From positions 186,001 through 250,000 of the IMG/VR virus record IMGVR_UViG_3300042879_006196: a stretch of DNA of 64,000 bases. One strand, 5' to 3'. The position numbers and the translations under genes are program-made. The notes beneath the pieces were generated by a model that was not told the DNA's origin, did not search any database, and worked only from the letters and a program-made list of their open reading frames with translations. Position 1 is the first letter of the stretch. Every line of letters begins with the position of its first letter. Shown here in pieces: positions 6,801-41,202 of this stretch.

Positions 6801-8849
6801 ACAGGAACATTTGTATTTAGGTTTGATTCTGGCGTGGCAGGTAATGCAACTTTTGATAATGTCATCTATTCATTTGCCACTCCATACTCACCAAAAGGAA
6901 CATCAAGTATACAATTTTATTACAGAGTTGATGATACACTAGATCAATTGAATTTAGATTCTTATACTTTGAATCCATTGTATCCTATCTCAGGTGGAAG
7001 TTATAACATTAATAAAACTGGGCGATATATTGACTTGGTGTTTATTCTTAATGCAGCAAGTGTGGATCAGCTTGCAGCCCCTGTAATTAGCAGTATAGCT
7101 TTGAATTATAGTGTTTATGGAAAAGCCACTGGAATTATTTACGATACCAATGTAAATAATGCACCACAAGGTTTGTATCCGAGATTGAAATGGACACAAG
7201 GTGAAAGTTCAAACATCAGCATAGTGCCAGTGCCAAATGATAACAATCAATCATATCAAATTGAGATAGAAGACACAGCTAACATTGGCAAATACATTTA
7301 TTTATCCACAAACAACCTAGAACTAACAGATTCTTCAGACACAACAGGATTCGTAGACATCAACAACAATCTTTACTTGTCGCCTTATCAAGCTTTCGCA
7401 GAACTAGATGCTGGTCTTTTGAATCCACAGCATTTCTATTCAAATGGACAATCTGGATATTTCATTGCTGACACTGACAATGATAGAGTTATTGAAGTGG
7501 ATTCAACTGGAGCGGCTACAAGAGCTATTCAAGGGAATATTAAGCTTCCAAGATGTGATCGCGCTTTTGCTATTTTAGGGGTTTTTTATAACACAAATAC
7601 ACGTCAGCTTTATGCCACTTTTAGCCAATATTTAATATTTGCTGCTGACTACTTACAATCTTTATCGGTTTCTATAAATGGTGTTTCTTATTCTTTAACA
7701 AATTCTGCTTATTTTGATCAAAATAATGTTGGACTGTTTTCTGTAAATTCTAATAATCAATCGGCAACATTCTATGTCACTGTTACTAGAACAATGGATG
7801 CTTTACTTACAGAGAATCCATATGATGCAAGATTTGAAATACAAAACCCTGCAACTAATCCTCCATTTTTGTTACCAACCACAGGCAGAAGTGATGGAAA
7901 TCAACCTGAAAATGAAACTTTAACTTACACCACTTCTCAGTTTGATGAGTTTACATCGAACAGCGCTCTTGGCTTAGGAACTATTCTAGACTACACATCT
8001 AATGTTGTAGTGAATGTAGTTGATCCAGTGACATTTGGTACAGCTACAGAAACATCAACAGAACTTTGGAGTTATTGGCAAGGCACAAATCAATTCCCTA
8101 ATTACTCAAACTTTTATTCTATACCAATACAAGTTTTTCCAATTTACTTTGATAACATATTTAAGCCTTTACATGTTGATTACACAGAAGCTGGTGCTTT
8201 AGTGATTTCTACCGTTGGAAACAATGCAATTAGAGCGTATAACGAAAACTTTGTTCTGGGATACAAGATTAGCCTTTCAAGTTTTACTTTTAACGAAAAA
8301 CTTGGAGGCTCCACTGTTGTATTAGATAGAGCCGCAGATGAAAGCGGAAATGTATTGCTTGTGGCACAACCAGGTATTTCCACAGACAACATCACTGGAA
8401 AAGCAATCATTTATAATCGAAATTCTGGTTCATTAGTGAATCAATATACTTTCAGTAATTTTGATGCTGTTAAAGCATACTCTGAAGATGATGGATATTT
8501 GATATTGCTTAATGATAGATTAGGCGGAATTAGATCTAAATTGGTAAAAGTTGGTCAAGATGGCTCTAATCAATATACATTAAGTAATGCATTTTCTAGA
8601 CCTGTCTCATTAGAAATAAAAGAAAATGGATATTATTATGTTACAGATTTAACTGGTCAATATGGAACTATTTTCTTTAGAACATTCGTTGCCGATGGTT
8701 CAGGAAATTCTACTGGCTCAAGTTCTTCGGGAGGTGGCGGTTCAACAGGTGGAGGAAACGCAGGTGGTGGAATTATCGGTGGCACAACAGGAGGAACATC
8801 AGGAGGCTCAACAGGCGGAGGCAACATTATAGGTGGTGGTGGTGGTTAA
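3804..8849 (+). CDS. Virion protein with NHL-repeat beta-propeller(s), 1681 aa
   Basis: At least six NHL-type repeats (LNSPLGLWFD..LYIADTYNHRI; FNYPKGVF..FYVADSGNNQI; LNDPRGLI..FVSDYNNHRV; FDHPQGLAI..ITDTDNNRI; RPAGVY..FVADSLNNRV; LNPQHFY..FIADTDNDRV); N-terminus shared with the 3069-aa ORF; Gly-rich C-terminus. Confidence 0.8.
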   Translation: MNQTPIYQLGYFIPNMTIGNDLDLDKNRFTTIENQLYNVYNIFGNGVLTKFDENGKQIPSWNLSAVPSQKTIRVSDGKGHVNYKYAETSDFVDVNLILPGSATSGTFIYYFYAVQNVNTPVDKSVNFTFSLTQINDPTNYIGLGAAELTLNTDGSFTLVAYNDVEHGRQEISLFSSLTGLVKNHKHIGGLNNPSPIDLSKHVTGFLSADNIEGLDLSRVTSGTLSANRLPVIDHNTLTNIGTLTHEQIDALLASLQYPDQNYSLSDYGIVNRLQIVLALKKQSGFFNIDGEQINSIFYVPYAQMDKFVDYTNTTALINTELHRVYGTTGLARQSNVIKVDTTQDFKTALFYAEDSIPNPTVSNIEVTGVTTTPVAGTLNIPYGLTGSANTIYISSAQDSFVSSFSTTGVYRNRRIDFDSNLNLNSPLGLWFDNVKNYLYIADTYNHRIIVTDSNFSSVIAKVGANNASGVPGSGNGVGFNYPKGVFGLGNTFYVADSGNNQIQKYSWSGGVPVYQRTYKYSDSTILGLNQSLNDPRGLIATSFRGNNYLFVSDYNNHRVLCGIETNNKYSVYQILGGNSGGFGIFNTSLITYNASSSVTGIGASFTFNSSFNGVIRSIGVSSSGAGYSNNDSFILKYNGNQNGLFNVLTDGAGRITTAFVSYGINTANIFGFDHPQGLAINGIGSRLDMLITDTDNNRIINYRSVVGVGTTSGQFVYSYNIGTSGSLGISSLSIYMQRPAGVYAQQGFSTIFVADSLNNRVHSLATSFANNSIGGITTFTFGIGDTSLTSGGITLTKPISYLGISTPSVAGSATAGWFVGEQIAQGTQFQSDSIDRYSYVTFSTKTLTIQDTIAVSIATLNETTERTLGQISCYLIFADNFSGGTLIPFSLSNNTNRNSIKISEKIYTIRLNGSTTSQFYDFADLTLFTEQPNPSIIGFGFKWSTSTGWTNNDSYQLGWYLPQFSTQLLQTNYPKVLAYRQANGLQNSIFAFNANRYAGTGTFVFRFDSGVAGNATFDNVIYSFATPYSPKGTSSIQFYYRVDDTLDQLNLDSYTLNPLYPISGGSYNINKTGRYIDLVFILNAASVDQLAAPVISSIALNYSVYGKATGIIYDTNVNNAPQGLYPRLKWTQGESSNISIVPVPNDNNQSYQIEIEDTANIGKYIYLSTNNLELTDSSDTTGFVDINNNLYLSPYQAFAELDAGLLNPQHFYSNGQSGYFIADTDNDRVIEVDSTGAATRAIQGNIKLPRCDRAFAILGVFYNTNTRQLYATFSQYLIFAADYLQSLSVSINGVSYSLTNSAYFDQNNVGLFSVNSNNQSATFYVTVTRTMDALLTENPYDARFEIQNPATNPPFLLPTTGRSDGNQPENETLTYTTSQFDEFTSNSALGLGTILDYTSNVVVNVVDPVTFGTATETSTELWSYWQGTNQFPNYSNFYSIPIQVFPIYFDNIFKPLHVDYTEAGALVISTVGNNAIRAYNENFVLGYKISLSSFTFNEKLGGSTVVLDRAADESGNVLLVAQPGISTDNITGKAIIYNRNSGSLVNQYTFSNFDAVKAYSEDDGYLILLNDRLGGIRSKLVKVGQDGSNQYTLSNAFSRPVSLEIKENGYYYVTDLTGQYGTIFFRTFVADGSGNSTGSSSSGGGGSTGGGNAGGGIIGGTTGGTSGGSTGGGNIIGGGGG
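8700..8846 (+). repeat. Gly/Ser/Thr low-complexity C-terminal tail ending in a GGT run
   Basis: Encodes GSGNSTGSSSSGGGGSTGGGNAGGGIIGGTTGGTSGGSTGGGNIIGGGGG. Confidence 0.8.
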
Positions 8850-10695
8850 TTTCATTTATCCAAAAAAAAATAATGTTTTTAAAGCCTCGCAATATTCAAC
8901 CCAATCAGTGTTTAATGATTTGCCGAAGTATTCAATATCCGTATATGATGATGCAAATTTCATTTACAAAAGACAATCACAAAATGGAAATCAAATCCTT
9001 TCTAACATAATCTCAGATGATTTATTCCCTGATGATTCTAATCAAGAATCAAAAACAAGATACTTAACAGGCAGAGGCACAAATTCTAAAATATTTTATC
9101 TTAAAGTGCTTGTAAATAAACCTGTGCCACAAGACACTCCTGGAAACTATTCAACTATTTTTTATTTAGCTAAAACACAAATATTTGGCGCGGTTTCTAC
9201 AGTATATTATTCATTAAGATGTATTGAAAAGAATCAAAACTACACTGCTTACACATCAGTGATAACAATTAAAAAATCAGATTTTATTTCTCAATTTGAT
9301 GGAAAAATATTTCTTAATCTTGTTGGTGATTATGATGTTTCTGTAAAATTTCCAATTGATTTACAAATTAATAATTCAGCTTCTACTTCAATAAGCCAAA
9401 TAAGTAGTGCAACACCTCAAACTTTAAGCTCCACTACAAATAATTCAGCATATTTTCAGACATACCCAGTGAGCTTTTCTTACTACGAATATTCTGATAG
9501 TCAAGATTTTAATTTTACTTACACAAACTTAGTGCTTACAAATAGTTTATTTTCCACTGCTAACACAATAATTAATTCAAATGTAAGCACAGGTATCTCA
9601 CTTAGGTTTACTTTTTCAGGCGTATATAATATTTCTGACTTTAGTTATTTTGGCTTGACCATTCAAAATACCGATCCATCTTATAATCCCAACGTTGACA
9701 CAATCTTCAAAATTGTTTTTAGAACAGTGGAAGACGAAGTGATAAGTGTAGAAGATTGCTCTATCTTGAATAATCTTAATTCTGGATATTACAATGTAGT
9801 GTTCAAACTCAAAAATATAGACACAAATCTTAATAATCTAAATTACATGCTGATACAAATAATAAGCACAAGAACATTAACACAAAACTACAGTATTACA
9901 TATATCAATTTTATGACAGCTATCACTGCTGGTGCTTTTTCTGTAAAATCGCTGCAAAACAATACACAAGAGGAAAATTTTACTAAAGATCCATTCGATA
10001 AAATACAATATATTGATAATTTAAAAAATCAAGAATTAATTAAAAGCACTGCTTTATTTACCACTGTCGAAAGCTTAATTGAAATAGGGGATGAAGTAGT
10101 TTATGAAATAACAACACAATCTGGAAAAATTTATTTACCAGAAAATGCTATGATATTTACTAGCAATGATTTTTTACCAGCATATTCTTTGGAGCAAGAC
10201 GTTTTAATTTTAGAAAATGATTCTTTCATGCCTATCACTTCAATAAAAATAATGCCTCCAAGAAAAGTGAAAATGATAGATATTTATGAGAATGCTGATT
10301 ATATTTTGAATGGATTTTATGTTAAGAACCCACTGTTTATAAAAAGTTTTCAAAGAATTTTTCTTGAAAGAATTGAAACTAGAAAACAAAATAAAAGTTT
10401 TTCAATAAATGATGAAAAATACTTTTTATTAGAATCAGAAGATTTTCAATATTTTTCAAATGAAATTGTTTTGAAAAAAGGCAATCATATAATTGAGTTT
10501 TCTCCTTCGACAATTTATGCATCGATTTTAATTAGTGGTAATTCTGAAATTGTTGTTCAATCAAAAATTAAACAAAAAGTAGTGGGACAAAATCAAAAAT
10601 TGCAATTAGATATAGATAATAAAAATTTTTTAATATATCTAAAAAGTAATAGCACAATAACTATACACAAACTAATATGTAAACATGAGAGTTAA
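8833..10695 (+). CDS. Putative virion protein with degenerate Hint domain, ~620 aa (start uncertain)
   Basis: Long ORF; ~10030-10329 reads like a Hint domain (IGDEV..VYEITTQSG..YILNGFYVKN) lacking the catalytic Cys and block-B His; paralogous to the next ORF. Confidence 0.7.
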   Translation: MVVVVNFIYPKKNNVFKASQYSTQSVFNDLPKYSISVYDDANFIYKRQSQNGNQILSNIISDDLFPDDSNQESKTRYLTGRGTNSKIFYLKVLVNKPVPQDTPGNYSTIFYLAKTQIFGAVSTVYYSLRCIEKNQNYTAYTSVITIKKSDFISQFDGKIFLNLVGDYDVSVKFPIDLQINNSASTSISQISSATPQTLSSTTNNSAYFQTYPVSFSYYEYSDSQDFNFTYTNLVLTNSLFSTANTIINSNVSTGISLRFTFSGVYNISDFSYFGLTIQNTDPSYNPNVDTIFKIVFRTVEDEVISVEDCSILNNLNSGYYNVVFKLKNIDTNLNNLNYMLIQIISTRTLTQNYSITYINFMTAITAGAFSVKSLQNNTQEENFTKDPFDKIQYIDNLKNQELIKSTALFTTVESLIEIGDEVVYEITTQSGKIYLPENAMIFTSNDFLPAYSLEQDVLILENDSFMPITSIKIMPPRKVKMIDIYENADYILNGFYVKNPLFIKSFQRIFLERIETRKQNKSFSINDEKYFLLESEDFQYFSNEIVLKKGNHIIEFSPSTIYASILISGNSEIVVQSKIKQKVVGQNQKLQLDIDNKNFLIYLKSNSTITIHKLICKHES

Positions 10696-13600
10696 TTTTC
10701 AAGCAAACAAAAATGATGTCAATCTTCTGATTAATGATCAGATTGTGTGTTCGTTTGTTAATTCAAAAATTTTATCAGAAAATACCATTCAATCTGGTGA
10801 AATATCAATCACTTTTGATGTGTCTCAAAATATTATTAATTTCAATTTAGAAAGCAAAAATTTTGAAATTTTATCAATGAAATTTGATTCAATTAAACTT
10901 TTAAAATCAAACAGATACTATTGTGATTTTGGAAATTCTTTAATAGAAATAGATTGTGAAAAAGCTACTTTAATAGCCAATACAAATCTTGTGATAGGTT
11001 TTTCTGGATTTCATAAATTTTCTTACGAAGTAAAAGAGTCATTTTATACATCTAGCTACAGACAACTTTCAGCATCAAGCGATTTAGTTTACAGTAAAGA
11101 AGCCCCTAGTTTTTCAATTACATTTTATAGAGATTTTCAAAACAACAACTTTAGCACTTTGTTTGACTCTTATAAAGACATTCAAATATTGTCGCTTGCT
11201 AATGCAAACTCCACAGAACAACCAAATAGCGCAGTAATTTATGTCAAAATTATATCTTCGAAAATAGATACTTATCCTGCAGTTTCTTTTCCTTTAACAC
11301 CTCAACAGGCAAGCCCAGTTTACACTCTTGCTGTATATTCTGAATATTACACTAATAAAAATAATAAACGTGTTGTACCTATCTATAAACTTTATAACAC
11401 AAACGAAGGAAGTGTATATTTAGCTGAATTTACATTAGAAAATTCTAATTACATTAATTTATTTGATGGAACCAGGCAATTTTTTGTTGAAGTTACAAAG
11501 TTCATTTACAATGGTTATTTGAATGTGAAAACAGAAATTAACGGAGGAACTCAAACAACTTCACCACAATCTAGCATCACTTCTAGTTCATCTACATTAT
11601 CTAGTATTCCATCTCAAAATTGTTGTTTTCAGTTTTACACTGGCTCATTGCCATACTATACCGCAAACTGGAGCAATACAACCTACACTTATGATATAGG
11701 TCGTTTATTGTGTGATTTTTCAATTCCAGAAACAACCACTTATCAAAGCACAAGTTTTGCCACGTCTTCAAACACACTTTTCTATAATGGATCTAATTTT
11801 ATAGGCATCAATGCTAAATATGATTTTTCCAATTTTTCATATAAAAATTATGAATGGATTTCATTATTTTTTGTCTCTTTAGATGATTTAACTAACGCCA
11901 CTATTAATAAAAATCTTTACTATTTAGAGGTACTATATTATTATGTGGAAATAAATCAACCAGATAAATTTGTTTTTTGTATGGACGACGCAAATATAAT
12001 CAATTTTGGGTCAAACTATGGATTACAAGCTTTCTTTGATTTCAATAAATATCTCAGAAAAAATGCAGCTAGTCCAGTTACTTTAAAAACAATTGAAATA
12101 CAATTGCAAAAATCAACTAATGTATTTCCGAATGAGTTTAGGTTATATGATTTTAAGCTATTTACAATTTATTGTGGTGGTCTGCCTAAAAAATATGATA
12201 TTGCTGTTAATGCGTTTGATAAAAATAGCTTAGATGAATTAGAAGCTTTAATCACCAATAGTCCTGCAGATAACAATTTAAATTCTTCTGGGCTTACGCC
12301 TTTCACAAGAAATTTTAATAATGCAACTAATGCTTCATTTACGGCATCAAGCGGACTATGGAAAAACTTAACAGACGGAATTTCTAGAAATTACACATTT
12401 GAATATTGGGTACTCAACAATATTACAGATAACAAAATTTATCAAAACACTTACACAATTGGAGTAAATGCTGATTATATGCTAAGTGCATATTTTTCTT
12501 TGCAATCAGATTCTTCTAGTAGTTCATCTAGTAGCTCATGTGTAGTTTATGGAACAAAAATACACACATCAATAAATGAAACTATTAATGTTGAAAACTT
12601 GAAAGTTGGAGATTACGTATTAGGACTAAATGGTTCAAATAATTTTACAAAATATAAAATTACAAAAATTTCAGAATCTCACTCTGAGCAAATTTATAAA
12701 TTATCTTTTTCTAATAATACATTAGAGTGTTCTGAATCACATTGCGTATTTAGCCCATTAGATTCTGGTTTTAAACAATCGCTTGAACTTAACACAAACA
12801 AAATTTTAAAATGCATTGATAAAAATCATAAAATTGATACAATTGAAATTTTGCCACCTAAAAAAGTAGTGAAACTAGAATTACAAAACAATGGTTGTTA
12901 TTTTGCAAATGGTGTGTTATCTCATTCACAAGATAAACATCCAGATTTTGTTGCTTTTGCTAAAAATCAATATAGAGCGATGAGCAATACTTATGTTGAA
13001 TTTTTGAAATATGGAGATACAACCTGGATCCCACCAAGTGGAATTAATTATTTGAAAATTGAATGTATAGGTGCAGGAGGCTTTTCAAGTTCTACAGCTG
13101 GAGGCGATGGTGGAGACTACTCCATGATTGAGTTTAATAATATATTCCCTGAATTTCCTACATTTGCATCAATTACATTTACAATAGGAGAAAATCCTTA
13201 TGCAATTCCAACATCCTTTATAGCTACATGGGACATAGGTTCTGGTCTTAATCAGTTTTGGGTAGCAGCAAGTTCAGGAGGTGGTATTGGAGGAGATACT
13301 GGCTACTATGGAAGTCCGCCCAATTTAATGTCTTTAGCAAATGGCAAAAGACATTTTGGAGGAAAAGGGGCAACTTTAGATTCTGGCACAGGCTTAGGTG
13401 GGGGTGGCGCAGCTGGCAAAAATGGAAATGGTGAAAGCGGGGGAGATTCTGTTAACTTTAATACTTGGTGGGGTGGTGCTTCAGGGGGAGGAGCATCAAC
13501 TCAAACACAAAGACTTCCTGGAAATCCAGGTGTGGAATACACCGCAAATGCTGGAAAATATGCTGGAGAACAAGCAGGATCTGGTGGAGGCGGAGCAGGT

Positions 13601-14530
13601 CTAATTCAAGGATTATCTTATGGAGGACTTTATGGAGGGGGGCAAGGTAGTTATCCACCATCTGGAATTCCAACGCTAAGCTCATACGGGATCATAATCA
13701 TTACATATAGAATTGGAAGTGAATCTAGTAGCTCTTCATCAACTAAGTCTTCAACTAGCAGTTCAAGCACGTCTGGCTCTACAGGGTCTTCAACTTTTTC
13801 TACACCAAGTAGCTCATCTACAAGTGGCTCATCTACAAGTGGATCATCTACAAGCGGTTCATCTACAAGCGGTTCATCTACAAGCGGTTCATCCACAAGT
13901 AGTTCGCCTCCAAGTAGTTCTTCCAGCTCAAGCTCCGCAACCACGTCTAGTTCTAGTTCAAGTGAGACATCGGTTACATCCCCTAGCACACCTCCAAGCT
14001 CAACCACTAGTTCAGATACTGGATCTTCCACTACTTCAAGTGCAACCAGTAGCATAACAGATTCTGGTTCTGGTTCAATGCCGCCTCCATCTATTCTTGC
14101 ATTAAAATCTGAAAATCAAGTAATGTTTAGTGCTTCAAATAATTATCAAACGCTTTGGAAATATTTAATTTCAAGTGTTTGGAAAAAACCTTTACTTTTT
14201 TCAACCGCAAGCCTTGATTCATTTAATGGCTATGTGTTTGATAATGAATCAAAAATAATGTTCAAATTTATAATTGATATTGAAAGTTATACTGACATTA
14301 TAAACTTTGTTATTATATCTGAAAAAGACAACTTTAATATTGAAAATCAAAATTTCACAACAAAAGATACAATCTCAACAAACAACAAAAATGTAAAAAT
14401 TATATGTTGCCCAAAAAATCCAGAAATTATATTTACACTTCACTCAGAAGAGCCAAACACAATCTATGGTTTTTTTGCCTTGGATGATTCAGAATTAGAT
14501 TCATTCATACTAAATCTTCAAGGTAATTGA
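10685..14530 (+). CDS. Putative virion protein with Hint domain, glycine-rich domain and Ser/Thr-rich tract, 1281 aa
   Basis: Hint CVVYGT..LKVGDYV..CSESH..YFANGVLSHS at 12539-12928; then WIPPSGINYLKIECIGAGG..GGDGG, a glycine-rich domain typical of phage tail proteins; then SSTSG repeats. Confidence 0.8.
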   Translation: MRVNFQANKNDVNLLINDQIVCSFVNSKILSENTIQSGEISITFDVSQNIINFNLESKNFEILSMKFDSIKLLKSNRYYCDFGNSLIEIDCEKATLIANTNLVIGFSGFHKFSYEVKESFYTSSYRQLSASSDLVYSKEAPSFSITFYRDFQNNNFSTLFDSYKDIQILSLANANSTEQPNSAVIYVKIISSKIDTYPAVSFPLTPQQASPVYTLAVYSEYYTNKNNKRVVPIYKLYNTNEGSVYLAEFTLENSNYINLFDGTRQFFVEVTKFIYNGYLNVKTEINGGTQTTSPQSSITSSSSTLSSIPSQNCCFQFYTGSLPYYTANWSNTTYTYDIGRLLCDFSIPETTTYQSTSFATSSNTLFYNGSNFIGINAKYDFSNFSYKNYEWISLFFVSLDDLTNATINKNLYYLEVLYYYVEINQPDKFVFCMDDANIINFGSNYGLQAFFDFNKYLRKNAASPVTLKTIEIQLQKSTNVFPNEFRLYDFKLFTIYCGGLPKKYDIAVNAFDKNSLDELEALITNSPADNNLNSSGLTPFTRNFNNATNASFTASSGLWKNLTDGISRNYTFEYWVLNNITDNKIYQNTYTIGVNADYMLSAYFSLQSDSSSSSSSSSCVVYGTKIHTSINETINVENLKVGDYVLGLNGSNNFTKYKITKISESHSEQIYKLSFSNNTLECSESHCVFSPLDSGFKQSLELNTNKILKCIDKNHKIDTIEILPPKKVVKLELQNNGCYFANGVLSHSQDKHPDFVAFAKNQYRAMSNTYVEFLKYGDTTWIPPSGINYLKIECIGAGGFSSSTAGGDGGDYSMIEFNNIFPEFPTFASITFTIGENPYAIPTSFIATWDIGSGLNQFWVAASSGGGIGGDTGYYGSPPNLMSLANGKRHFGGKGATLDSGTGLGGGGAAGKNGNGESGGDSVNFNTWWGGASGGGASTQTQRLPGNPGVEYTANAGKYAGEQAGSGGGGAGLIQGLSYGGLYGGGQGSYPPSGIPTLSSYGIIIITYRIGSESSSSSSTKSSTSSSSTSGSTGSSTFSTPSSSSTSGSSTSGSSTSGSSTSGSSTSGSSTSSSPPSSSSSSSSATTSSSSSSETSVTSPSTPPSSTTSSDTGSSTTSSATSSITDSGSGSMPPPSILALKSENQVMFSASNNYQTLWKYLISSVWKKPLLFSTASLDSFNGYVFDNESKIMFKFIIDIESYTDIINFVIISEKDNFNIENQNFTTKDTISTNNKNVKIICCPKNPEIIFTLHSEEPNTIYGFFALDDSELDSFILNLQGN
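13814..13903 (+). repeat. Six tandem 15-bp repeats (consensus tcatctacaagYggN) encoding SSTSG
   Basis: Directly visible: tcatctacaagtggc / tcatctacaagtgga / tcatctacaagcggt x3 / tcatccacaagtagt. Confidence 0.95.
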
Positions 14531-14558: not shown

Positions 14559-17500
14559 ATGTCGTGGAATTTGCAAATTGTCCCAAAAGGACTCCTATTA
14601 AGTAGATATATTAAAAACGTTATTTTGTTAAATCCAAATAATGTTAAAAATGTCGAGAACAATCCATTGATTCTTGATCAATATCAAACTTATAATGCGG
14701 CAAATAACACAGCAAATATTGTTTTTCAGCTCGCAGTTTATAACACAAATCCACAAAATCAAGCTAGTGAGCCGACAATCACTTCTATAAATTTCATTCA
14801 AATCTCTAACGATCCTTTGTTTAATGAAGTTTATTACTTAATTCCAGCTAAGTTTTCACAAGCCTATAATCTGCAAACTGATTATGAAGTAGACTTAAGC
14901 GCTTACTCATTTACACAAACTGCGTTGCCTGCTTCCCAATCAGTAACTTTCACTGAAAGCAGTGGCACAGGAAATATTTCGATTAAAAACTGGGCTCTTT
15001 CAGGCTCTTCTGGCGCTAAAAAAGTATACTTCAGCATAAATGCCAATTTAAGTGATGGCACAAATGCCACATATCCAGAGGGGCTTGATGTGTATGATGA
15101 AATCATTGTATGTTCAAGTTTTATTTCGTCCCCTGGAGTTCCACAAACTTTAGCTAAATCTAAACAAAATTATTCATCTTCTCCATTATATTTTGAAGCA
15201 GACGTGGCAAGCAATTCTGGAATTAATCAAATTGATGATTATGGAGTTGCATCTTATTTTTGGGATGGATTAATTCTCAAAACCACTGATAATGTTTATA
15301 GAAATAATTATTCACAAGAAAATATTCAATTGTTTAATTCTATTTCGCCAAAAGCATCAAATTTAAATCAAGAAAAACTTCCAGTGGTTTTTTCTACTAC
15401 TTTAACAACAACTAATTGGTCATCTTCTGCATATAAAAAATATATAACAGCAAATGCTTTTACTTTGACAGCTTCTGATAATGTTTATTTCTTTGAATGT
15501 TATGTTAACAATTACTCTAACACATTAAATTATGTTAGTGGGAAGAGTTTTTTTTATGAATTTAATGTTGTAAACAGCACAGGCTCCACTAAGTATTTGA
15601 GACAGCAATTGGTTTTTGATGAACAGTTTAACACATTGGTGATCTATATTTCAATTGATGATACAACATGGTCTAGTGATTCAAGCTATGTCCCTTCTGC
15701 ATTATATAAAACGATCACAATCACAAACCCAGATGTAATTGGTCAAATTACACAATCTGGAAGCTTCATTACATTTATTGAACTTTTAGATTCTGCAAAT
15801 AAAATCTTACAATCTAAAATCATATTCAAGCCTCAAAATTCCACTGATAGTTTTGTGGTATCAGAAACACTTTTCACTTCTAATACTTTTAATTTAGCAA
15901 ATGCCTACGGTGAATTCAGATTCTTTTTACAGAACTCAACATACACTACCGTTCTTGAATCAGTGCAATATGGATTATGCCAGGGGGCAATTTCGGCTGC
16001 AGTAATGCCTAATGATAAAATCATTACAGATTATAGTAGTAAAGTAGAAAATTCGATTTACAATTTCAATGACTCTGCAAAACTTAATACTTGGTTTACA
16101 ATTTCTAACTCTCCAGCCTCAGGTGTTGTTAATACGACAACATCTACTGTGCAGCTTTTTAATAATCAAGAAAATGATGGAATAAATAATTTATCTGCTA
16201 TTGAAATACAATCTTCAGTGCCAACTTTTTCAGTGGATTCCACGCTGATTTCTCGCTTTAGAGTTTCAAGTGCCAATTCTGCTGTATTAAAAACTGCTTA
16301 TTCGTTTGATAGCAATTTAAATTATGAAAATTTTGTTTTTAATGATTTACTCCAAACCTCTAGTGGAGTATATTTACCGCAAAACAACGCATTATATGAA
16401 TACACCACTTCTCTAAGCTGGACTGGATCAAGCAGATTTGATTTAAATGTTTTTAATGTTGGTCTTGGGCAAACTTGTTCAATTACCACAACAAAAACTA
16501 ACAACTTATTTTTCTATTCTCAATCAAACAATAGTGGAACATTAACACCACCAACAATCATTAAAACTGTATCAAATATTTCTAGTACAAATATTTTTAA
16601 TGCTTGGATTAGTACAAATGGCATTTCCACAGCTTTCATTGTTCAAAGTTCTTTATCTGTCAAAAATAAAGGGTTAGTTCCTATTACAATCACTTCATCG
16701 GCAGGATTAAGTACAATTTTACCTGGTCAACCTTTTGTAAATTCAATTTCTACTAATTCTTTGCAACCAACACAAATTATTGTATCTGCTCCTTCAAGTT
16801 CTATATCTAATAGTCTAAATTTCTTATACGATTTTGGCAAGATTGGGACAATCACTGATTTAAGTTTAAAAATTCAGATTGCAACACCACCTGAGTGTCC
16901 ATCTACTTTACCATCCTTCCAATACTCAGTGGAGGTTTCGGACGATTTTATCAATTGGACTTTTGTTTCATCACTCACTGCCACTGATACTTTTTATCCA
17001 TCAACAGGCGATTTGCTGTTGAGTTTTAGTGATATTGATCAAGAAAATGTTAGATATGCAAGAGTGAGATTGTATTATAATATTGCTGTAACTTTTGATC
17101 CAAGAACAATCTATAGATATTCAAGTTTGCAAGGGACAATCTCTTCCTCTTCTTCAATTACAAATACTGGAAAACTCATCTTTGGATTTACTGATACTAG
17201 TGCTAAAAATTCATCTTTAAATCAACTTTACAATCAGCCAACATATTTGAGAAAATATGTGACAAATTCAAGTGTTGTAAATGGAATAATTTTTGATTTC
17301 TCAGAATATTCAACAACAATCGGTGGACCAGTTTATTTAAGTTTACTCACTGAAACTGAAGAAAAAAGATTTTACACAATCGCTAACAATTTCTCATTAA
17401 GCACAGACTATACATTCTCATTTAGTGTGCAGAGGACAAATTCTGATAATGCTTTTCATTTGAAACCATTTTTTACTCTAAGTGGGGGAAATCTAAATGA

Positions 17501-20500
17501 ACTATCATTAAGTCTTGATGATATTCTCACAGAACCTTTAGATACACAATCTCTTACTTTTGGATTTTATCCATTTATATCTTTGATTGGTAATGGCAAC
17601 GCCACTGTATCTTACTCCGTGTTTAGAGGCACTTATAATCATGGGCTAAGTTACCAAAAAGATAAAACATATTTTTCATTGTTATCAAGTGAAAACCCTG
17701 ACTATACTTCTCAGTATGGAAAAAATGTTATTGCTCAAAATACATACGGAATTACCACTTCAGCATTTCCGCAGATAGACACATACTTTTCTAATAACTC
17801 TATAAAGCAATTTAAATACGAAAATGTTACTTTTACAGTTAAAGCAGCATCAACTAGTCCAGTAGGTCTGTATGGACAAACTTATATAGACGGCATATAT
17901 TTAGATTTTTGTGATTATGTTTTGGTTGCTGGTCAAGTTGATAAAACAACAAATGGTGTATATCAAGTTCAAAGCCAAAGATGGGTTAAACAATCTGCAT
18001 TGCCTTCAGGTAGTAATTTATCTGAGCCTACAGTGTTAGTAAGCCAGGGAAATATTTTTGAAAATACACTTTGGATGCTAGATAAAACCTCATCTGAATG
18101 GATTAGCAATGTGATTAGTTGCCCAGTCGTAATTGAGGACAATAATCTTCTTTTCACAGGAGTATCATCTTCTTATAAATATCCACAATATATTAAACTT
18201 GCATGTTCAGTAAATGGAATTGCCAGCCAAAGCACCAGCAACCAAGTACAGATAAAATTGGCGAATTCTCCCACAGAAATTATTCAGGAAACTGATCAGA
18301 TTACACAATGGGTTGGATTATTGCAAAATGGACAACTTTACAATATTCAAGAAAAAAGCAATTCTAATAACACTGTATTTATGAATTTTGGAATTTCAAG
18401 TTCTCAAATTTCAGGAATTACAACAAATAGTTTTCCAGCAGTTTACAATATTTTAACAAGTTATGCTGGTAATTTTGCACCAGCAATATCAAATAATTCA
18501 GATTTTGTTCTTCCAGCTTACGGTTCTGAATATAGAATTTTCAAAAATGCTAGTTTAATTTATCAGCTATTTTCAACCTATGATTCGGTGAGTTTGAGTT
18601 CTTTGTCCACTGCAGTTGTAAACTCTTCAGTGTATGCACTTAATTTTGCAAATCTTAAATCACCACAATCTGGTTATAGTACAGATATATTCATTGATAA
18701 TGTTGCACCAACTATAGGAATTGTTTCTGTTTTAAATGATCAAACAAAATCTGTAACTCTTGGTGTATCCACTGCATTAGACGCTGGGTCTGGTTTATAT
18801 ATAGCAAGAATTGTTCAAAGAAATCCATCCAATGAATTAATATATGGATCTTGGTTTGGTTTTAATACAAACAGTTTTTATGGCTTATCAACCTTTACTG
18901 CATATCCTTCATATGTATCGAATGTAAATGGAATTTCCACTGGAGAACCTCTTTCAGGTTATTATAGATATAGCTTGCAAGTGGCAGACTCTGTAGGAAA
19001 TGTAGCACAAACAAATCAAGTAGAAAGTTTTTATTATGAATCTGCTCTTGTTGACACACAAGGTCCAGGATGTTCTGTTCAGTTTGTCAACTCACAAACA
19101 TTTGAACCGATTTCAATTTCTTCATCTACAATCTTAACTGCTCAGATGTTTGCAACAGACACATTATCTCAGGTCAAAGCTTTTAGATATAGAATTCTAC
19201 CTGATGGAGAATTCGGCAATTGGATTGACTATAATGAATATGCTAACATTTATCTTCCTGAAAATATTTTAGACGGCACACTATCTGTCCAATTTCAGTT
19301 TAAAGATTTTGGCAATAATGTGTTGTATTCAAATTCTACAATCATAAATGATCAAGTTTATGTTTATTCATGGAACATTGTATCAAAACTTATAAACAAT
19401 ACTCTTTTCACTGTCACTGAAGTTACGAAATACAATAATAACTCAGTTCTTTTGATTGGTGCATCTAAGCAAAATGCTGCTACACTTTTTGTGTGGGACA
19501 ACAACAAACTGATTGAATTACAATATTCTGGCTTTACAGGATGTAAAGCTGTTACCGCATTGATAAAAGTGGGAACACAAGTTTTAATTGGAACTGACAA
19601 TGGTTCTATATTCACATACAGAAATGGTGTGGTGGCAGGTCCATTCGCTACTTTGAGTTGGGGCGATACACCTTTGCCAATTTCTAAATTTGAAATTCAC
19701 TCTTACCCAGAAGACAACACAAGTTTTGTTTACGCAACAACATTAAATATTCCAAGAATTTTTAGAACTCCAACTGATAGCTTGAGATCTACTTCTTGGG
19801 AAGTAATTCAACCACCATTTATTTCTCTGGAGAAAATTAATGTATTGAATTCGGGGCTTTGGTCAGGTACACAAATTTCATACACAATCTCATCAAGTTA
19901 TATACCAGCCACATTATCACCAAACTATAGTTATGGTATTTCAAGTGTTATTGTTGCCAGCTCTGGTTCTAATTTACCAAGTGCGCCTACAATTACTGTT
20001 GGTGGACCCATTACAAACCTTGGATTACAGCCAGTAATGCAAGGAAGTATTGGTCAAATTATTTTAATTGCAAGTGGTCAAGGGTATTCGTCTGGAGCCA
20101 CAGTAACAATTGCATCACCAGCAACAGGAGGATCATCAGTACAAGCCACTGGTGTTGCAGTAACAAATTCACTTGGTCAGATTGTGTCGATAGTTTTGAC
20201 TGCTGCAGGCTATGGATATACTGCACAGTACCCAGCTGTAACAATCACAGGAAATTCTGGAAATGGAAGCCAAGCTACCGCTACAGCAATAACACAATTT
20301 GATTCGATTTATTCTGTTACTGTCACTTCAACAGGTATTGCTACAACATCTAACATTACACTGACTACATCAGGTGGCGCGGTTTTAATTCCTACATTCT
20401 TGTATAGAGTGCCATCTATTACATTGACAAGCCCAGGCTTTGGTTATACATCAAGCCCAATTGTTTCAATTAATGGTTTAACAACCTTAGCAAGTTCAGT

Positions 20501-23500
20501 GGCACAATATGGTTCAATACAATCTATCACAGTGAGTGAGCCAGATGTAGAATTTCCAATCACTCTTTCTCCTAGTATATCTTTTATTGGTGGAGCATCC
20601 ACTTCGTTTACCGCTAGTTTATCAACCACATCAATTTCTTTTTCTACAGGTTCGACCGATAGTTTCTTAGGATTTGTATTAAGCTCAGCAAGTATCACAA
20701 CAAGTTCTGTTGGTTTTGGGACTATTCCTCAGATTGTGTTTACAGGAACTGGAACTACAAATATTTTCTTACCACAGCTAGAATATGTTTTATCTGATGA
20801 CATTCTTTTATATACAAAATCTGGTTCAATTTATGATATTAAATCTTTTGATAATAAACTTTTTGTTTCAAGTTCATCAGGCGATATTGTAGAAATTGGT
20901 TATTCAAGCGGAATATTCAGCGCAGAGAGACATAAACTTAATGTCAATAGCAATACTTTTTCTAATATTATTCCTGTTAATTTGGCAAAATATAATGATG
21001 GTATAAGCACTAATCTTTATTTTAGCACAAAAGAAGAGCCTTATATTGGAAAGTTAACAAAAAATCTAAACAGTTTTATTTTTGATTCTTATCGTGATAA
21101 CATTTTACTTTTCAAACCTTTTAATTTTGATATTCTTTCAAACTGGCAACTTAAGAAAATTATCAATGATAATGGTTTTGCAAACGTTTCTTATGGAGAT
21201 TCAAACAATAGTTCTGTTGACATCACAACATTTAATGCTCAAGCTTTTTATGAAACTACAAAAGAGAACACATGGTTCAACAGATGTATTACTAATAATG
21301 ACTATTTAGTGTTGTTTGATTTCCAGGCAGTTATTGGAACACAATCTTTTGAAATTTCAACTTTTAATTCTACACTTAAAGTAGCATTTACAGTTTTAAA
21401 TAACACTCTACAGATTGCTTTTGGAAACAATAACTATTCTACTATTGAAATTGATCTTTCATCTAATTACAATATTTATTTTGCAAAGAGTTCACAAAAT
21501 TTATACATTTACAATGATTCTAACTTAATTTACAGTGAAATAGGATTTTTTGTAACCGTGAGTGCACAACCAGTTATTAAGTTTGGTTACATATTCGAAC
21601 CACAAACTGTTTCAGCCAATGGTGACACTCTGTACATATTTGGTTTACCTTCTAATGCTGAATCTTCACAATTTATTTGGAGACAAATTAAATTCTCATT
21701 TAATAGCAGCACTAATGTATTACCAACTGATTATTATAGTTTAAGTTTACCTTATGTAATGGCTAATTCTAGCTCTGTAAGAGCACTTAGAAATATAAAC
21801 AATAGTTTGTTTGCCGCAACAAAATCAATTTTAGATAGAAGAAGTACAACAAATCTTCCAGATGTTGGCACTAAAGTTTTTAGATTAGATAATGATTACT
21901 GGAGTGATGTTACAGGTAACTTTGATACATATACAGCAAGTGTAAGCACCTCTTATGTAATAACTTCACCAAACGACATTAACGCTTTAGACAATTCGTA
22001 TTTTGTTACAGGTTTGGTTAAATCAATTCCAACAAGACAAGCAGCAAACACAATTATTCTTGGTCTTACATCGAACACAATTTATGAAGAACAAAATGGT
22101 CTTATATTAACAATTATTTACCCATATAATATTGAACCTTCAGGCAAATTCTTGTTTATTTCAAGCACAAATAGTAATGTAACAGTTCCTTCTTCTGTCT
22201 TCTTTAGTTCAAGCGATCAAGTTCAAACTGTTGCTGTGGGAATTGGATCTACATCAGTAAACTCAAATGTCACCTTAACTGTAACTGATGGTGATATTTC
22301 CCAATCTGTTACAGCTAATATTTTGCCAATTGGAATTTCTACTCTTGGATTCAATACAAATCTTTTTGTTGGATATTCTCAAGATTCTGTAATTGCAAAT
22401 ATAAGATTGACATCAGTTCCTAAAACAAACAGAACAATTTTATTATCTAGCAATAATAGTTCAGTGCTGGCAGCACCAACAAATGGAATTGCTACAATTA
22501 CAGCGGGTAATATTGGAATCTTTACTTCATTCTCAGTTGGCACAGCTGTAGCATCTAACACTAGCGTGACTATTGCTGCGTCTTACAGATCAACATTTGG
22601 GATAGCTACAGTTGTTGCATCTCCATTTGTTTTGTCATTAGGCGTAAATACAAATACTTTTGTTGGCAATGAATCCACAAGAAAAGTATTTGTAACATCC
22701 AGCGTTCAAAAATCCCCAATTGGCGTATTAACAGTGAATTACACCTCAAGTAGTAGTGCTATATTAAGTATACAGCCATCCGCTGTAATATCTCCAGCTT
22801 CTTTCAGCACAACTACTCAATTAACAATTGGAAATGCTGTCACTACCAACACTCAAGTCAATTTGACAGGAAGATTTACTGGATCAATTTCCACTGGAAT
22901 TTCTACTGCCACTCCGTTTGTTGTGACTACAGCGACCACTGACTTATCAAGTCCAGTTTTAGGTTTACAAACTTCTAACGTTACATTTACAATTAATACT
23001 ACACCTCTTACTAATGTGTCGGTTAGAAACATTGTGAGTTCACCTTCTTTTGTTAATATGGTGTTCCCTACATTCTCAACAGTCCTTGCTGGTACTTTAT
23101 CTACCACTTTTGCAATATCTACTACAATTCAAACATCAGCAGGATTAGCTATTACAATCAAAGGTGCGCCATTTGGATTCAACACTTCTCCAACTCAAGG
23201 TTTAATACTTTCTTCTGACGTTTGGAAGATTACAGGGTTTTCTATTTCCCCAACTTCAATTGTTGGAAATGGGCTTTTCGCAAATGGCATAGGTCAATCA
23301 TATATTCTAAATGTTTCACTTAATATTGGTTTGCAAACAACAATTCTTATTACATCAAGTACAGGCTTTGTTAGCACAAGAAACATTAATTTCTTGACCA
23401 CAAGCACAGGCTCAGCATCATCTATTGGATATGCCACTGGATTTTCTACTTCTGCAATAACAAACGTAACTATAACAGCCACTGGTCCTAATTCTATATC

Positions 23501-26500
23501 TAGTTCAGTAAGTGGCTTGTTCTTAAATCCACTGTTAATTTCAAGTTTTTCGACAGCTTATGTATGGAATGACATTGCAACATTGTCTCCTAATTATACT
23601 ATAGGAGGTCTAGGGGCAACAGTGATTGGCACTGTTGTGCTTAATTCTTATGTAGCCACAGGTGTTCAAACTATTCTTGTAAGAGCAAGCAATGTAACCA
23701 CTCCTATAAGAATTTATGGTCAATCTTCTTCATCGGAAATTATAGGCTTAGCAACAGTATATACAGGTAGCAACACTACAAGTATTAATTTTGGGGCAAA
23801 TTTTGTTTCTGTAAATACATCAGAGCCAATTACAGCTAGAATAATTTCTTCTGGTAGTGGTGTAGCAACAACGCCTATCAATGTTTACACCTATCCATCT
23901 TACAGTGCAATTTTCTATCCTGTTTACAGTGGTCGAGAAAACTATTTTGCACTTTCTGTTGGAACAAGTTTGCCAGTGAGCATTGGTTTTGCTGTAACTT
24001 TTAATAGTGGAGCTGGAATTGCTATAACAGCCACTCTTTTTGCGCAACAAAATCAAGTGTTGGCAAGCGTAAATCTTGGAACATTTAACACAGATAAGGT
24101 AATTTTAGCAGAAGTTGTGGCTTTAGGCTCAATGCAAACCTATTATGTGACAGGATATGCAAAAACAGGGGACGTTTTTGGTATGGGCTACAATTACTAC
24201 GGGGAACTTTCATATAATTATCCTGTTTTAGGTCCAACAAATGGTTCGGCAGATAAGATTGCAATGAATCTTGGAAACATTGTTAAAACTGTATCAGGCT
24301 ATCATCATAATTTAGCTCTTGATTCATATGGATATGTTTATGGTATTGGTTATAATGCATATAATCAAATAGATTCTACTGGTATATCCACAAATGCTTT
24401 CAAACTCATCAACACAAATAACACATATGTCAGAGACATTTTTGCTCAAGGTAACTCTTCTTACTTTATAACTGCCGATAACAAACTATATGGTTTTGGA
24501 GAAAATAATTCATATAGTTTGGGTACTTCAGGGTTTGCAAGCACAAGTGCTCCTTATCTTATAGCTTCTAATGTTGTTTTAGCTAGTATTATTTATGATA
24601 GAGGTGCTTACGTAACCTATGACAACAGGCAAGGAATACAATCAGTGTATGAGTTTGGTAATGGAGCAGCTGGAATAACAAGTAAGCCCATCACTACATT
24701 GACAGATCAAGGCGTAACAATTCCCATTAGTAATTTGAGAATTTCAAATATTGATAATGGTCAGTATCATACAGTGGCGTGTGGCATATGGTCAAATCAA
24801 ACTTTAGGTTTTTCTTCTAGTGGTGTTTTTGCTTGGGGAAGCAATGCATATTATCAAATAGGAACTTCTATTTCTATTGGCTATATAACAGTGCCTAATA
24901 TTCTTCATAGATTTACCCAAGGAGGGGTTGATCATGTTACACAATCTAATAACATTTACGCTGTTGATAGATTATCTGGTGTTGTTGAAAGTTATATACC
25001 TCAGGATCAATACTTTGTAGGCTCTGTAACAATGAATACTCAAGGAATTGGATATACAGCAGGAGCAACTGTAACGTTTTCTGCTCCTCCTGTAACCCCA
25101 TCTTCCGTTACAGCAACAGGTTACGCAGTCACTAACGCGATTGGAATTGTTTCATCAGTCCTAATTACTAATCAAGGAGCAGGTTATAATCTTGGAGCAG
25201 CTGTTACGTTTTCTCCTCCACCAGCAGGAATAAATACTCGAAATGCTACTGGTACTGTTATTGTAAGCGCCAATAAAGTGGATTCAATTGTTATCACTGA
25301 TTCTGGTAATGGTTATACTGAAGCCCCAACAGTATTTATTTCACCAATAGCTGGTGGCTCAGGAGCGGCAGGAATTTCTTCAATGGCGTATAGCCAAATC
25401 ACACAAATTATCGTCAGCAATTCTGGTTTTGGTTATACAAACGCTCCAACAATAACAATTTCGTCTGTTGTGGGTTCAGGTGCAACAGCCACAGCAAATA
25501 TCGAAACTATTGCTGAGCCAATTAACATTATTTATCAAGTTGGAGTCAGCGTGACTTCGAACGCTACTGGATTTGGTTTAGCTCAAACATCTATCGCTGC
25601 TCCTTTATATGTAACAATACCTCAAGTATTACAGCGTATTTCTAAAAACTCTCAACATTTTGTTTGGACTATGCAATCTGGTTTAGTTTATGTCTCAGGC
25701 GGATCAGTGGGTCCGATACCTCTTACACAGTTAACAACCACATTTACACAATCTGTTAGGCTGTTTGCACAAAATGAACCTCTCTCTACAAATGAACTTT
25801 ATAGTTATGTGTGGTCAGCTGGCTCAAACATAACAATTTCACTATTTGCTGGGGAAATTGTTCAAACTCTGAGTCAAGTTCCTGTAAAAATCAGTAGCCA
25901 AAACCAATGGGGTCCAACTAGTAACAATGAGTGGGGCTGGGCTTTAACACTCAAAACTGATGGTTCAATCGATTTCTTTAGACAACACCCAACGATTGTT
26001 CCTAAGTATGTTCAGAATTATCTACAAAATATTTATGGAAATACTTTTGTTGATGTTTGTGCTACAAGCTATTTCAAGCCTACTAGACTTTATGGTGATT
26101 CAAACTATGCACCTGTAGCTCTTTCTTATTCAGGAGGCAACGTATTTGTTATAAGAACTCAAGGCGTAAGCAGTTACAATGTTTACCTTTCTAAGGCATC
26201 ATCTGTTGCCCCTGTCCTAATTGATTCTGGCTATTTAAGTTATGAATATGCTAGTTTAAGAACTTATGCAAACTTCGCTGTGGCATACGCTGATGGTACA
26301 ATTGAGCTTTATGTCCAAACATCTTTTGGGTTTGGTCATAGCCTTCTCACTTCTTGGAATCCAGATGGATCTCAGATTTCTATTTTAAAGAGTTTAATTA
26401 ATGCAACCACTGATACGATTGTAAATGTTACATCTTCAAGTTCAAATTTTGTGTATCTTTATGTTGGAACGCAAAATAGATTACTAAATTGTTATTATGC

Positions 26501-40275: not shown

Positions 40276-41202
40276 ATGTCTAATCCAATTAAATTCATTC
40301 CAGATTTAAGAGATAAAATTTTAAATCAAGTTTCTATTCTGAATGAGCAACAGAATTGGGGGCTATCTTTTATTGAAGCTTCTTATGCTTGGCAACATTC
40401 AAAAGGAGAAGATGTAAAGGTGGCAATAATAGACACAGGATGGTTTCCTCACAAAGATTTACAAGTGAATTTTTTAGATGGGTATGATGCCACTGGCAAT
40501 AATGATTTTATGGATCATGGCTCATATCATGGCACACATGTGGCTGGAATAGTTGGTGCTAATTGTGGGCAAAATATTGGCGTAATGGGTGTTGCGCCAA
40601 GCTGTAAACTTATTCCCATAAAGGCACTTGATGATGATGGCACTGGTTCATTTGATTTCATTGCAAACGCTTTACAAATCGCACACGACTTAGATGTAGA
40701 TATAATCAATATGTCTCTTGGAACAGAATCCGATTATGGTCAAAGCAAAGTACATTCATTGATAAAAGATATAACAGCAAAGGGCAAGATTGTGGTTTGT
40801 GCTAGTGGGAATGATGGAGAAGATGTAAACTTTCCAGCAAAATATGATGAATCAATTGCTGTGGCAGCTGTTGAAAATGATGGAAAATTGGCTCGTTTTT
40901 CTTCGAGAGGTCCTGAGCTTGATGTTGCGGCACCTGGTGTAAAAATTTATTCTACTTGGGGAAACAATCAATATGTGAATCTTGATGGCACATCTATGGC
41001 TTGTCCAACTATTTCTGGAATAATTGCATTGATAATTTCTTGGTATAAAAAAAATCCAGACCCAAATTTTCAAATAAATTTCACGAACATGATCAAACTT
41101 ATGTATGATTTAGGTGGACCAGAAGGTGACCATATTGTACAACAAGGATCGTATAATATTGGAGTGCCTAAATTACAAAATTTTAATCCTTGGAAAAATT
41201 AA
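40276..41202 (+). CDS. S8 subtilisin-family serine protease (intracellular-subtilisin-like), 308 aa
   Basis: Catalytic triad motifs IIDTG, HGTHVAG, GTSMACP and oxyanion CASGN; no signal peptide; short N-terminal extension containing KFIPD. Confidence 0.95.
   Translation: MSNPIKFIPDLRDKILNQVSILNEQQNWGLSFIEASYAWQHSKGEDVKVAIIDTGWFPHKDLQVNFLDGYDATGNNDFMDHGSYHGTHVAGIVGANCGQNIGVMGVAPSCKLIPIKALDDDGTGSFDFIANALQIAHDLDVDIINMSLGTESDYGQSKVHSLIKDITAKGKIVVCASGNDGEDVNFPAKYDESIAVAAVENDGKLARFSSRGPELDVAAPGVKIYSTWGNNQYVNLDGTSMACPTISGIIALIISWYKKNPDPNFQINFTNMIKLMYDLGGPEGDHIVQQGSYNIGVPKLQNFNPWKN

Follow-up and report, generated by a model that had tools for sequence, protein, structure and literature searches.

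The window analysed here, 64,000 nucleotides in length, comprises bases 186001-250000 of the 347,392-bp virus record IMGVR_UViG_3300042879_006196, which is rated 99% complete. Its plus strand carries a run of very large open reading frames (ORFs; 1102, 1681, 620, 1281, 4138, 1339 and 3069 aa) with an S8 subtilase after them, and two adjacent members of this run, P0001 and P0002, are the subject of this study. P0001 (8833..10695, plus strand; 620 aa, GTG start, stop included) was found to contain a Hint domain that has lost its catalytic residues, and P0002 (10685..14530, plus strand; 1281 aa) a Hint domain in which the N-terminal catalytic residues are in place. Both ORFs had been described in an earlier reading of the DNA letters (the sequence-only reading) and are present at the lengths it gave, with an 11-nt overlap (10685..10695, plus strand) that possibly reflects translational coupling. 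Inteins, Hedgehog processing domains, BILs and pretoxin modules are the familiar forms of the Hint domain, and the knowledge of them is nearly all about catalysis. Here, one operon pairs a competent-looking Hint with a paralog whose N-terminal chemistry was lost long ago, in a family that has diverged to 24% identity.

We compared the two proteins directly and through family profiles. Orthologs of P0001 were collected by a word search (n = 13) and by an exhaustive profile search of 1.84 billion representatives, which returned 36 matches and approximately 24 full-length clusters at 50% identity; P0002 orthologs were taken from the DNA adjoining the P0001 orthologs. Pairwise BLASTP was limited to the C-terminal half of the Hint, pairing P0001 417-494 with P0002 664-743 (25% identity), and reached just E 1e-4 over 80 residues, which by itself would suit a compositional coincidence between two AT-rich, Ser/Asn-rich ORFs. 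The family profiles (12 rows for P0001 and 8 rows for P0002), however, aligned colinearly over 439 columns, with P0001 30-505 matching P0002 139-756 (hhalign; probability 95.5, E 1.3e-8). The N-module alone (P0001 31-209 and P0002 141-316; E 4e-6, score 53) and the Hint alone (E 3e-7, score 46) were also significant, and the profiles of the pseudo-Hints and live Hints matched each other at E 1.2e-11 over 113 columns. Ten column-shuffled controls for each piece gave E 0.07 or worse with scores of at most 20 (E 0.15 or worse for the N-module shuffles). Because the profile alignment is significant while the column-shuffled controls fail, the similarity goes beyond composition; with the Hint fold also confirmed independently by structure, coincidence was rejected and we regard its probability as negligible.

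P0001 and P0002 are true old paralogs, and the ordered blocks that the sequence-only reading had traced through the two ORFs were largely recovered by hhalign. Most of its paired blocks were borne out, including PKYSISVYDD/PSFSITFYRD, QILS, FYLK/IYVK, YFQTY/CFQFY, PPRKV/PPKKV and the NGFYVKN/NGVLSHS end. Its pairing of PFDK with AFDK did not hold, as PFDK (387-390) lies inside the first strand of the pseudo-Hint and AFDK is found at 509-512 of P0002. It was noted that the two C-terminal domains, and likewise the middle sandwiches alone, gave non-significant hhalign results, and that 7nit 1043-1214 is the top structural match of both middle domains (Z 9.5 for P0001 and 8.4 for P0002). A tblastn search of both proteins against 50,697 phage records returned no match.

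The pseudo-Hint of P0001 occupies approximately residues 377-499 (9961..10329, plus strand), as delimited by structure match and profile alignment. AlphaFold2 with the 12-row family alignment modelled P0001 380-620 at a predicted local distance difference test (pLDDT) of 80-90. In this model, residues 380-499 superpose on the gp41-1 intein (VIA; Z 15.4, root-mean-square deviation 2.4 A, 119/127 residues of the 6riz chain, chain residues 4-125), and the Hedgehog structures 1at0 and 6tyy (Z 14.7-15.1; 1at0 14.7) and BIL2 6y75 (Z 13.8) follow closely. Scores for the DnaB and RecA mini-inteins were similar to that for gp41-1, more than 40 intein, Hog and BIL entries lie at Z above 10, and Foldseek gave a probability of 1.00. 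The 22-row profile also reached gp41-1 by sequence (E 2.8e-4), while phmmer of P0001 380-520 alone against PDB and scans of P0001 against Pfam, PHROG and NCBIfam gave no match. As modelled, the pseudo-Hint is a complete Hint fold, similar in size (approximately 123 aa) to the Hint of P0002 (approximately 130 aa). Inteins, Hog and BIL domains have this horseshoe-shaped beta fold in common, typically at approximately 130-150 aa. The segment therefore models as the sequence-only reading had anticipated, with other boundaries: it had been placed at 10030-10329, and structure and profile move its start approximately 20 residues earlier. The internal segment thought to be missing from this copy is not, since 119 of the 127 residues of gp41-1 are matched.

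The residues required for N-terminal chemistry are missing throughout the family. The Cys1-equivalent positions (377-381) are variable or gapped across the 24 clusters, leaving no conserved nucleophile, and the block-B position 439 is His in 0/24 clusters (Ala439 in P0001). Block B of P0001 reads L-P-E-N-A where inteins have T/S-x-x-H, with L-P-E-x-x as the family pattern (P436 20/24, E437 18/24). Because the Cys1 equivalent and the block-B His are lost in all 24 clusters, the pseudo-Hint is, on its residues, unable to form a thioester. The alignment of the block-B His with Ala had been correctly seen before (His686 = Ala439 by both BLASTP and hhalign); the catalytic Cys had been aligned with Glu, and we found that Cys619 of P0002 instead matches the variable, gap-prone N377-Q379, with the Glu near 401 belonging to a GDYV turn. 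The domain is held by purifying selection and is not decaying. Between the window and L012, a 97%-identical relative, its ratio of non-synonymous to synonymous change (dN/dS) is 0.064 (10 synonymous versus 3 non-synonymous differences), and between L006 and L008 it is 0.072; neither value is above the rest of the gene, and neither is that of neutral decay.

The end of the domain is strongly conserved, with K498 in 23/24 clusters, N499 in 21/24 and then P500 in 24/24, and the block-F Asp D483 is kept in 20/24. In the model, Asn499 superposes on the terminal intein Asn (model 499 = gp41-1 125), and an intein whose Cys1 has been mutated can retain cleavage at its C-terminal junction. The pseudo-Hint could in that way be half alive, with cyclisation of Asn499, the Asn-lyase step of inteins (PMC4031507), cleaving Asn499-Pro500 and releasing the 120-aa C-terminal sandwich. 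We consider this improbable. Three family members carry Met, Leu or Ser at 499, two of which form their own clade, and both cyclisation helpers, the penultimate His (Lys498 here) and the block-F His (variable 488), are missing. The residue that is invariant is Pro500, which stands where an intein would have Cys, Ser or Thr after its terminal Asn and is equally consistent with a structural domain boundary.

The Hint of P0002 occupies residues 619-748 (12539..12928, plus strand), as placed by a profile of seven such Hints compared with PDB. Its key residues are Cys619, the block-B S683-E-S-H686 and the penultimate His747, with Ser748 replacing the terminal Asn and Gln749 next. Searched by itself, the sequence reaches E ~1e-3 against both Tetrahymena BIL2 and the gp41-1 intein, and the seven-Hint profile, drawn from five lineages, matches over nearly its full length the gp41-1 intein (E 1.4e-10), Tetrahymena BIL2 (E 1.7e-10) and a Clostridium thermocellum BIL (E 4.6e-7); the Hint fold of P0002 is taken from this profile match to solved Hints. 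Among these seven Hints, which are 33-67% identical, C1, C64-S65 and H68 (C-S-x-x-H) and H129-S130 are invariant, and the Cys1, C-S-x-x-H and H-S residues are also found in the first Hint of L016, bringing the total to eight Hints from six lineages. The residue at +1 is Gln749 in P0002 and Glu in one copy. The nine-Ser run (610-618) of P0002 ends exactly at the predicted scissile bond, Ser618|Cys619, and in the orthologs every first Hint is likewise preceded by a flexible Ser/Gly/Pro linker (S-, GS- or SP-rich).

We then considered to which class of Hint the P0002 domain belongs. It shares with inteins the nucleophile at position 1 (Cys619) and the block-B T/S-x-x-H with its invariant His, and it differs in the His747-Ser748-Gln749 end, where inteins have a terminal Asn (or Gln/Asp) followed by Cys, Ser or Thr. 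With no terminal Asn and no +1 Cys/Ser/Thr, the domain is predicted to be unable to splice. Inteins are inserted at conserved sites of host proteins that have intein-free homologs; here, a Hint-free allele was not encountered among the orthologs examined, and every Hint sits between linkers or domains. An N-terminal catalytic set, no splicing partner and a location in the variable region of a non-enzymatic protein are the marks of autoprocessing Hints of the BIL or Hog type, and P0002 and its orthologs show all of them. The domain is thus best filed, on its residues, with the autoprocessing Hints and not with the inteins, and it appears equipped for the first step, the N-to-S acyl shift, as described for Hog, BIL and BIL2 Hints (PMC5874633, PMC8616854).

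Of the known systems, the BIL domains, including Tetrahymena BIL2 of the BUBL locus (6y75, 6tmm, 2lwy), are with gp41-1 the best sequence matches of the P0002-type Hint. They resemble it as small Hints of approximately 130 aa with no homing endonuclease and no +1 nucleophile, located in variable non-enzymatic proteins and, as in L006, L014 and L016, in tandem or flanking a cassette. However, BIL2 and A-type BILs end in His-Asn and the live-type copies in His-Ser, so that no cleavage by Asn cyclisation would be expected; moreover, the host proteins here are giant phage proteins, in contrast to ubiquitin-like arrays or bacterial secreted proteins, and the activity here is a predicted one. Hedgehog and Hog domains (1at0, 6tyy) share with the reaction predicted for P0002 cleavage at the N-terminus only, a Cys thioester that is attacked by a nucleophile from outside the C-extein and the separation of an N-terminal functional body from a Hint-bearing C-terminal piece, and their fold matches the pseudo-Hint. 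Here there is no sterol-recognition region, the scissile bond is Ser-Cys rather than Gly-Cys, the context is a phage, and the similarity is structural with no specific sequence similarity.

The mini-intein gp41-1 (cyanophage-like; 6qaz, 6riz) is the best structural match of the pseudo-Hint and the best sequence match of both profiles, and its block B (S-E-E-H) is close to that of P0002 (S-E-S-H). The differences from it are those given above (no terminal Asn or +1 nucleophile in P0002; no Cys1 or block-B His and a Pro at +1 in P0001; no intein-free allele); on these residues neither P0001 nor P0002 should be able to splice, and the Hints here are resident parts of an architecture. The PT-HINT domains (PF07591) of polymorphic toxins also stand ahead of a variable C-terminal cassette, with weak matches in orthologs (L004 at E 0.0037; L014 faint) and Atlas viral clusters labelled DUF642/PT-HINT. 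The scores are nevertheless below the Pfam threshold (best 18 bits in an ortholog versus a cut-off of 27.7), and the Hint is followed either by a glycine-rich domain, by further Hints or by no cassette at all, before a conserved C-terminal domain that is not a toxin. Neither a toxin domain nor an immunity gene could be recognised, and Pfam, PHROG and NCBIfam scans of P0002 gave no toxin family. The S74 intramolecular-chaperone autopeptidase, a self-cleaving module found at the C-terminal end of phage fibre proteins that are long and of low complexity (PMC7824862), is a functional analogy only, as its fold and chemistry are unrelated (a Ser-Lys dyad versus the Hint thioester) and no sequence match was found here.

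We assessed the conservation of the pair across ten lineages (window/L012, L003/L010/L011, L004/L005, L006, L007, L008/L009, L013, L014, L015 and L016). The dead-Hint gene lies directly upstream of a P0002-like gene in 10/10 lineages, usually with a short overlap, which is again 11 nt in L003, L010, L011, L012, L007 and L015 and 4 to 16 nt in L006, L013, L008 and L016; in L004 the next gene starts just past the stop of the dead-Hint gene. The first Hint of the P0002-like gene has the full N-terminal catalytic set in 6/6 lineages whose contigs reach far enough, so the arrangement of a dead beside an active-type Hint, raised by the sequence-only reading, is kept in these relatives. A related-locus search with the 12-row alignment added one new IMG/VR locus. 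In the tree, a 100/99 branch separates all 23 pseudo-Hints from all P0002-borne Hints. We are highly confident of the paralogy, both folds, the residue states, the conservation, the purifying selection and the synteny.

The stretch after the first Hint behaves as a variable cassette. In the window it holds a glycine-rich domain and in L004 nothing; L006 has another, non-glycine-rich domain together with a second Hint, and the Hints in tandem number two in L014 and three in L016. In the L006 ortholog (L006:6895-11034), two catalytically intact Hints flank the non-glycine-rich middle domain, and in the L014 ortholog (L014:11824-16100) two catalytically intact Hints lie in tandem, approximately 35 aa apart. 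The L014 and L016 orthologs also carry a large beta-propeller-like insert ahead of the linker, and an IS605 OrfB/TnpB (Cas12f-like) gene (L014:16515-17858) lies just downstream of the former. A TGA=Trp code, which the record gives as required by the P0001 ortholog of L008/L009 (L008:9072-10973), was considered and rejected; the single in-frame TGA, at codon 619, is a true stop that coincides with the end of the close ortholog P0014 and was read through by the gene caller.

The repetition of Hints, once, twice or three times per ortholog in the manner of repeated modules, bears on whether either Hint is catalytic in vivo. In the L016 ortholog (L016:9862-15774; IMGVR_UViG_3300042691_050360), the first of the three tandem Hints keeps a complete catalytic set. 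In the second, position 1 is Ser and Tyr replaces the block-B His; in the third, position 1 is Gly and Cys replaces that His, although the end is a canonical His-Asn. Both later copies remain in frame without the key residues. Hints might accordingly serve as beta-rich building blocks of a long fibre, the catalytic-looking residues of P0002 being structural or historical. We think this quite unlikely, as the eight Hints of six lineages, at 33-67% identity, show no variation in Cys1, C-S-x-x-H or the penultimate His, and each first Hint follows a flexible linker as expected of an exposed scissile bond. Furthermore, because the drift of the extra L016 copies hits exactly the catalytic residues, these residues appear to be under selection where they are invariant. 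The drifting L016 copies group with the P0002-borne Hints in the tree, a pattern consistent with a single ancient loss in the line of P0001, as judged from sequence, followed by a later, independent decay inside the L016 ortholog.

The account that we favor, with moderate confidence as a whole, is that an ancient tandem duplication in a freshwater jumbo-phage lineage produced two co-transcribed and probably translationally coupled all-beta proteins with a common plan of body (N-module and CBM-like jelly-roll), Hint and C-terminal domain. In P0002, Cys619, the block-B S-x-x-H and His747 would drive an N-to-S acyl shift at Ser618|Cys619. Because a terminal Asn (Ser748 here) and a +1 nucleophile (Gln749 here) are absent, the thioester would be resolved only by hydrolysis or an outside nucleophile, and cleavage would part the 618-aa body, which keeps the Ser tail, from the piece made up of the Hint, Gly-rich domain, linker and C-terminal domain. 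In P0001, the Hint would be kept as a structural, non-catalytic module joining the body permanently to the C-terminal sandwich. The outcome would be uncleavable (P0001) and cleavable (P0002) versions of one protein plan. A retained pseudo-Hint beside an active-type Hint, with a non-catalytic role, is our best reading, as it was of the sequence alone; the loss of catalytic residues in 24/24 clusters, the full fold, the low dN/dS and the constant pairing speak for it, and the part of the earlier claim that called the neighbouring Hint active stands as a prediction of cleavage. The actual cleavage of P0002, a place of the pair in the virion and the part played by the dead domain are inferred.

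Several observations weigh against this account. The P0002 Hint matches several Pfam Hint families, all below threshold, and it has no counterpart of the Asp/His that classical inteins carry in block F. Among the polar residues of the pseudo-Hint, those conserved best (E437, D483, K498 and N499) fall in the blocks from which live Hints build their active site; their near-invariance is left unexplained by pure scaffolding, and they may provide a salt-bridge network, residual chemistry or a pocket for ligand binding. The virion role draws on generic beta-sandwich matches (Z ~8) and gene neighbourhood. A read search for the P0001/P0002 stretch returned DNA contigs only, with RNA or proteome support absent among the runs found. 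The prediction of a complex between P0001 and the P0002 Hint scored 0.00, a value that by the tool's own account speaks neither for nor against.

That prediction relates to a further possibility, in which the dead Hint acts as partner, acceptor or regulator: P0001 would dock on P0002 and control its cleavage or supply the resolving nucleophile, giving a hetero-oligomer that is possibly covalent. The strict pairing, the gene overlap and the shared N-module kept over deep divergence are in its favor, as are the nearly invariant Lys498 in the vestigial pocket and the behavior of BIL2, the closest solved relative by sequence, which passes its N-extein to a lysine (PMC8616854). The co-occurrence of adjacent paralogs is, however, expected from synteny alone, and we rate this possibility as fairly unlikely. 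A bolder version, by analogy with Tetrahymena BIL2, is that the P0002 thioester might couple the 618-aa body to a second molecule through a lysine or hydroxyl of the latter. The two proteins would then form, in the phage particle, a system for covalent assembly or attachment that needs no enzyme, with the dead Hint as its acceptor or docking module. Candidate acceptors would be the near-invariant Lys498 of the pseudo-Hint pocket, another virion protein or the host surface. We give this version only a slim chance, and if the thioester does pass to another molecule rather than to water, the consequence would be larger.

On our favored account of a cleavable and an uncleavable paralog, P0001 offers a clean example of a pseudoenzyme with a Hint fold and raises the question of what the Hint fold does without cleaving. 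Single, tandem or triple non-intein Hints appear here as resident parts of giant proteins in abundant lake jumbo phages. Searches of the open-access literature gave no account of non-splicing Hints or pseudo-Hints as resident domains of jumbo-phage proteins, which agrees with the statement in the sequence-only reading that no such phage system is known to it; what they returned were terminase and RNR inteins, the S74 autopeptidase of fibres and unrelated uses. Atlas clusters labelled as viral Hint or PT-HINT proteins do exist, so Hint-bearing phage proteins are catalogued, if uncharacterised.

Outside the Hints, both proteins are all-beta and multi-domain, with every domain below on the plus strand. 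In P0001, the N-module (residues 30-209; 8920..9459) is homologous to P0002 139-316 by hhalign, has S34, I35, D39, R47 and Q48 invariant in the family and was modelled mostly at pLDDT below 50. It is followed by a CBM-like beta-sandwich or jelly-roll (residues 207-366; 9451..9930; AlphaFold2 pLDDT 70-89), for which the VIA matches to 7nit 1043-1213 (Z 9.5) and CBM28 1uww (Z 9.2) are of a generic fold only. After the pseudo-Hint comes the C-terminal beta-sandwich (residues 501-620; 10333..10692; AlphaFold2 pLDDT approximately 70-90), whose structural matches are weak and generic (Z 8).

P0002 begins with an extra beta-sandwich that is absent from P0001 (residues 1-120; 10685..11044; AlphaFold2 pLDDT 83-96), with generic VIA matches (Z ~8) to the N-terminal sandwich domains of GH92 and GH81 enzymes. 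The N-module (residues 139-316; 11099..11632), homologous to P0001 30-209, has a P-S-F-S-I-T motif that is invariant in the orthologs, and the CBM-like jelly-roll (residues 313-497; 11621..12175; AlphaFold2 pLDDT 70-93) matches, after the 7nit domain already given, the phi812 baseplate protein 9euf_H (Z 8.1). A poorly modelled segment (498-609; pLDDT below 35) and the nine-Ser run, together at 12176..12538, lead to the Hint. The glycine-rich domain (residues 777-989; 13013..13651), the variable cassette that is absent or replaced in orthologs, covers 214/226 positions of Pfam Gly_rich_2 (PF21722) at E 5.9e-4 and 20.3 bits, below the 24.3 cut-off, with further leads to phrog_4474 (E 5e-4) and to PF21722 clusters in the Atlas (0.86). 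The Ser/Thr/Gly-rich linker (approximately 1005-1133; 13697..14083), defined by composition, reaches 80% Ser+Thr over 1021-1110. Within it, at 13849-13893, in-frame 3-nt insertions and contig breaks were encountered in independent lake metagenomes, and the linker length varies within the population. The C-terminal domain (approximately 1134-1281; 14084..14527) is conserved in orthologs including L016 (W-K-Y ... W-K-K motif).

On the modelled folds and the gene context, the pair likely represents virion-surface or tail-associated adhesin or fibre components. Searches of BFVD, a viral structure library, returned mostly tail, fibre and minor structural proteins at low TM, and a tail tube gene in the window and the phi812 baseplate match add to this structural context. 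Naming the pair outright as tail fibre proteins was considered and rejected, since the fold matches are generic (Z ~8, TM <0.2). The conserved neighbours of the pair are beta-propeller giants with NHL and RCC1/WD40-like signals. The ORFs of 4138 aa (14559-26975) and 3069 aa (31034-40243) keep their synteny with the pair; RCC1/WD40-like signals were seen in orthologs of the former, and the window copy of the latter has a BNR match at chance level only.

The phage is present in many lake-water metagenomes, with 18 runs containing at least half of the sampled words of the stretch. Two runs labelled RNA-Seq were rejected as evidence of expression, being probably DNA of a strain mostly 90-99% alike. 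Bases 10001-12000, which take in the last part of P0001 and the first third of P0002, have the lowest G+C of the window (26.7% versus approximately 32-33%), and an Rfam scan of the window gave no match. Beyond the giant ORFs and the S8 subtilase (40276-41202), the phage genes of the window include, besides the tail tube protein, PhoH, RNase HII, a UvsW-like helicase and an Hsp70 and DnaJ pair. The phage-encoded DnaJ (J domain, Zn finger and C-terminal domain; 41842-42798) and Hsp70 (45062-46687) have the UvsW-like helicase between them.

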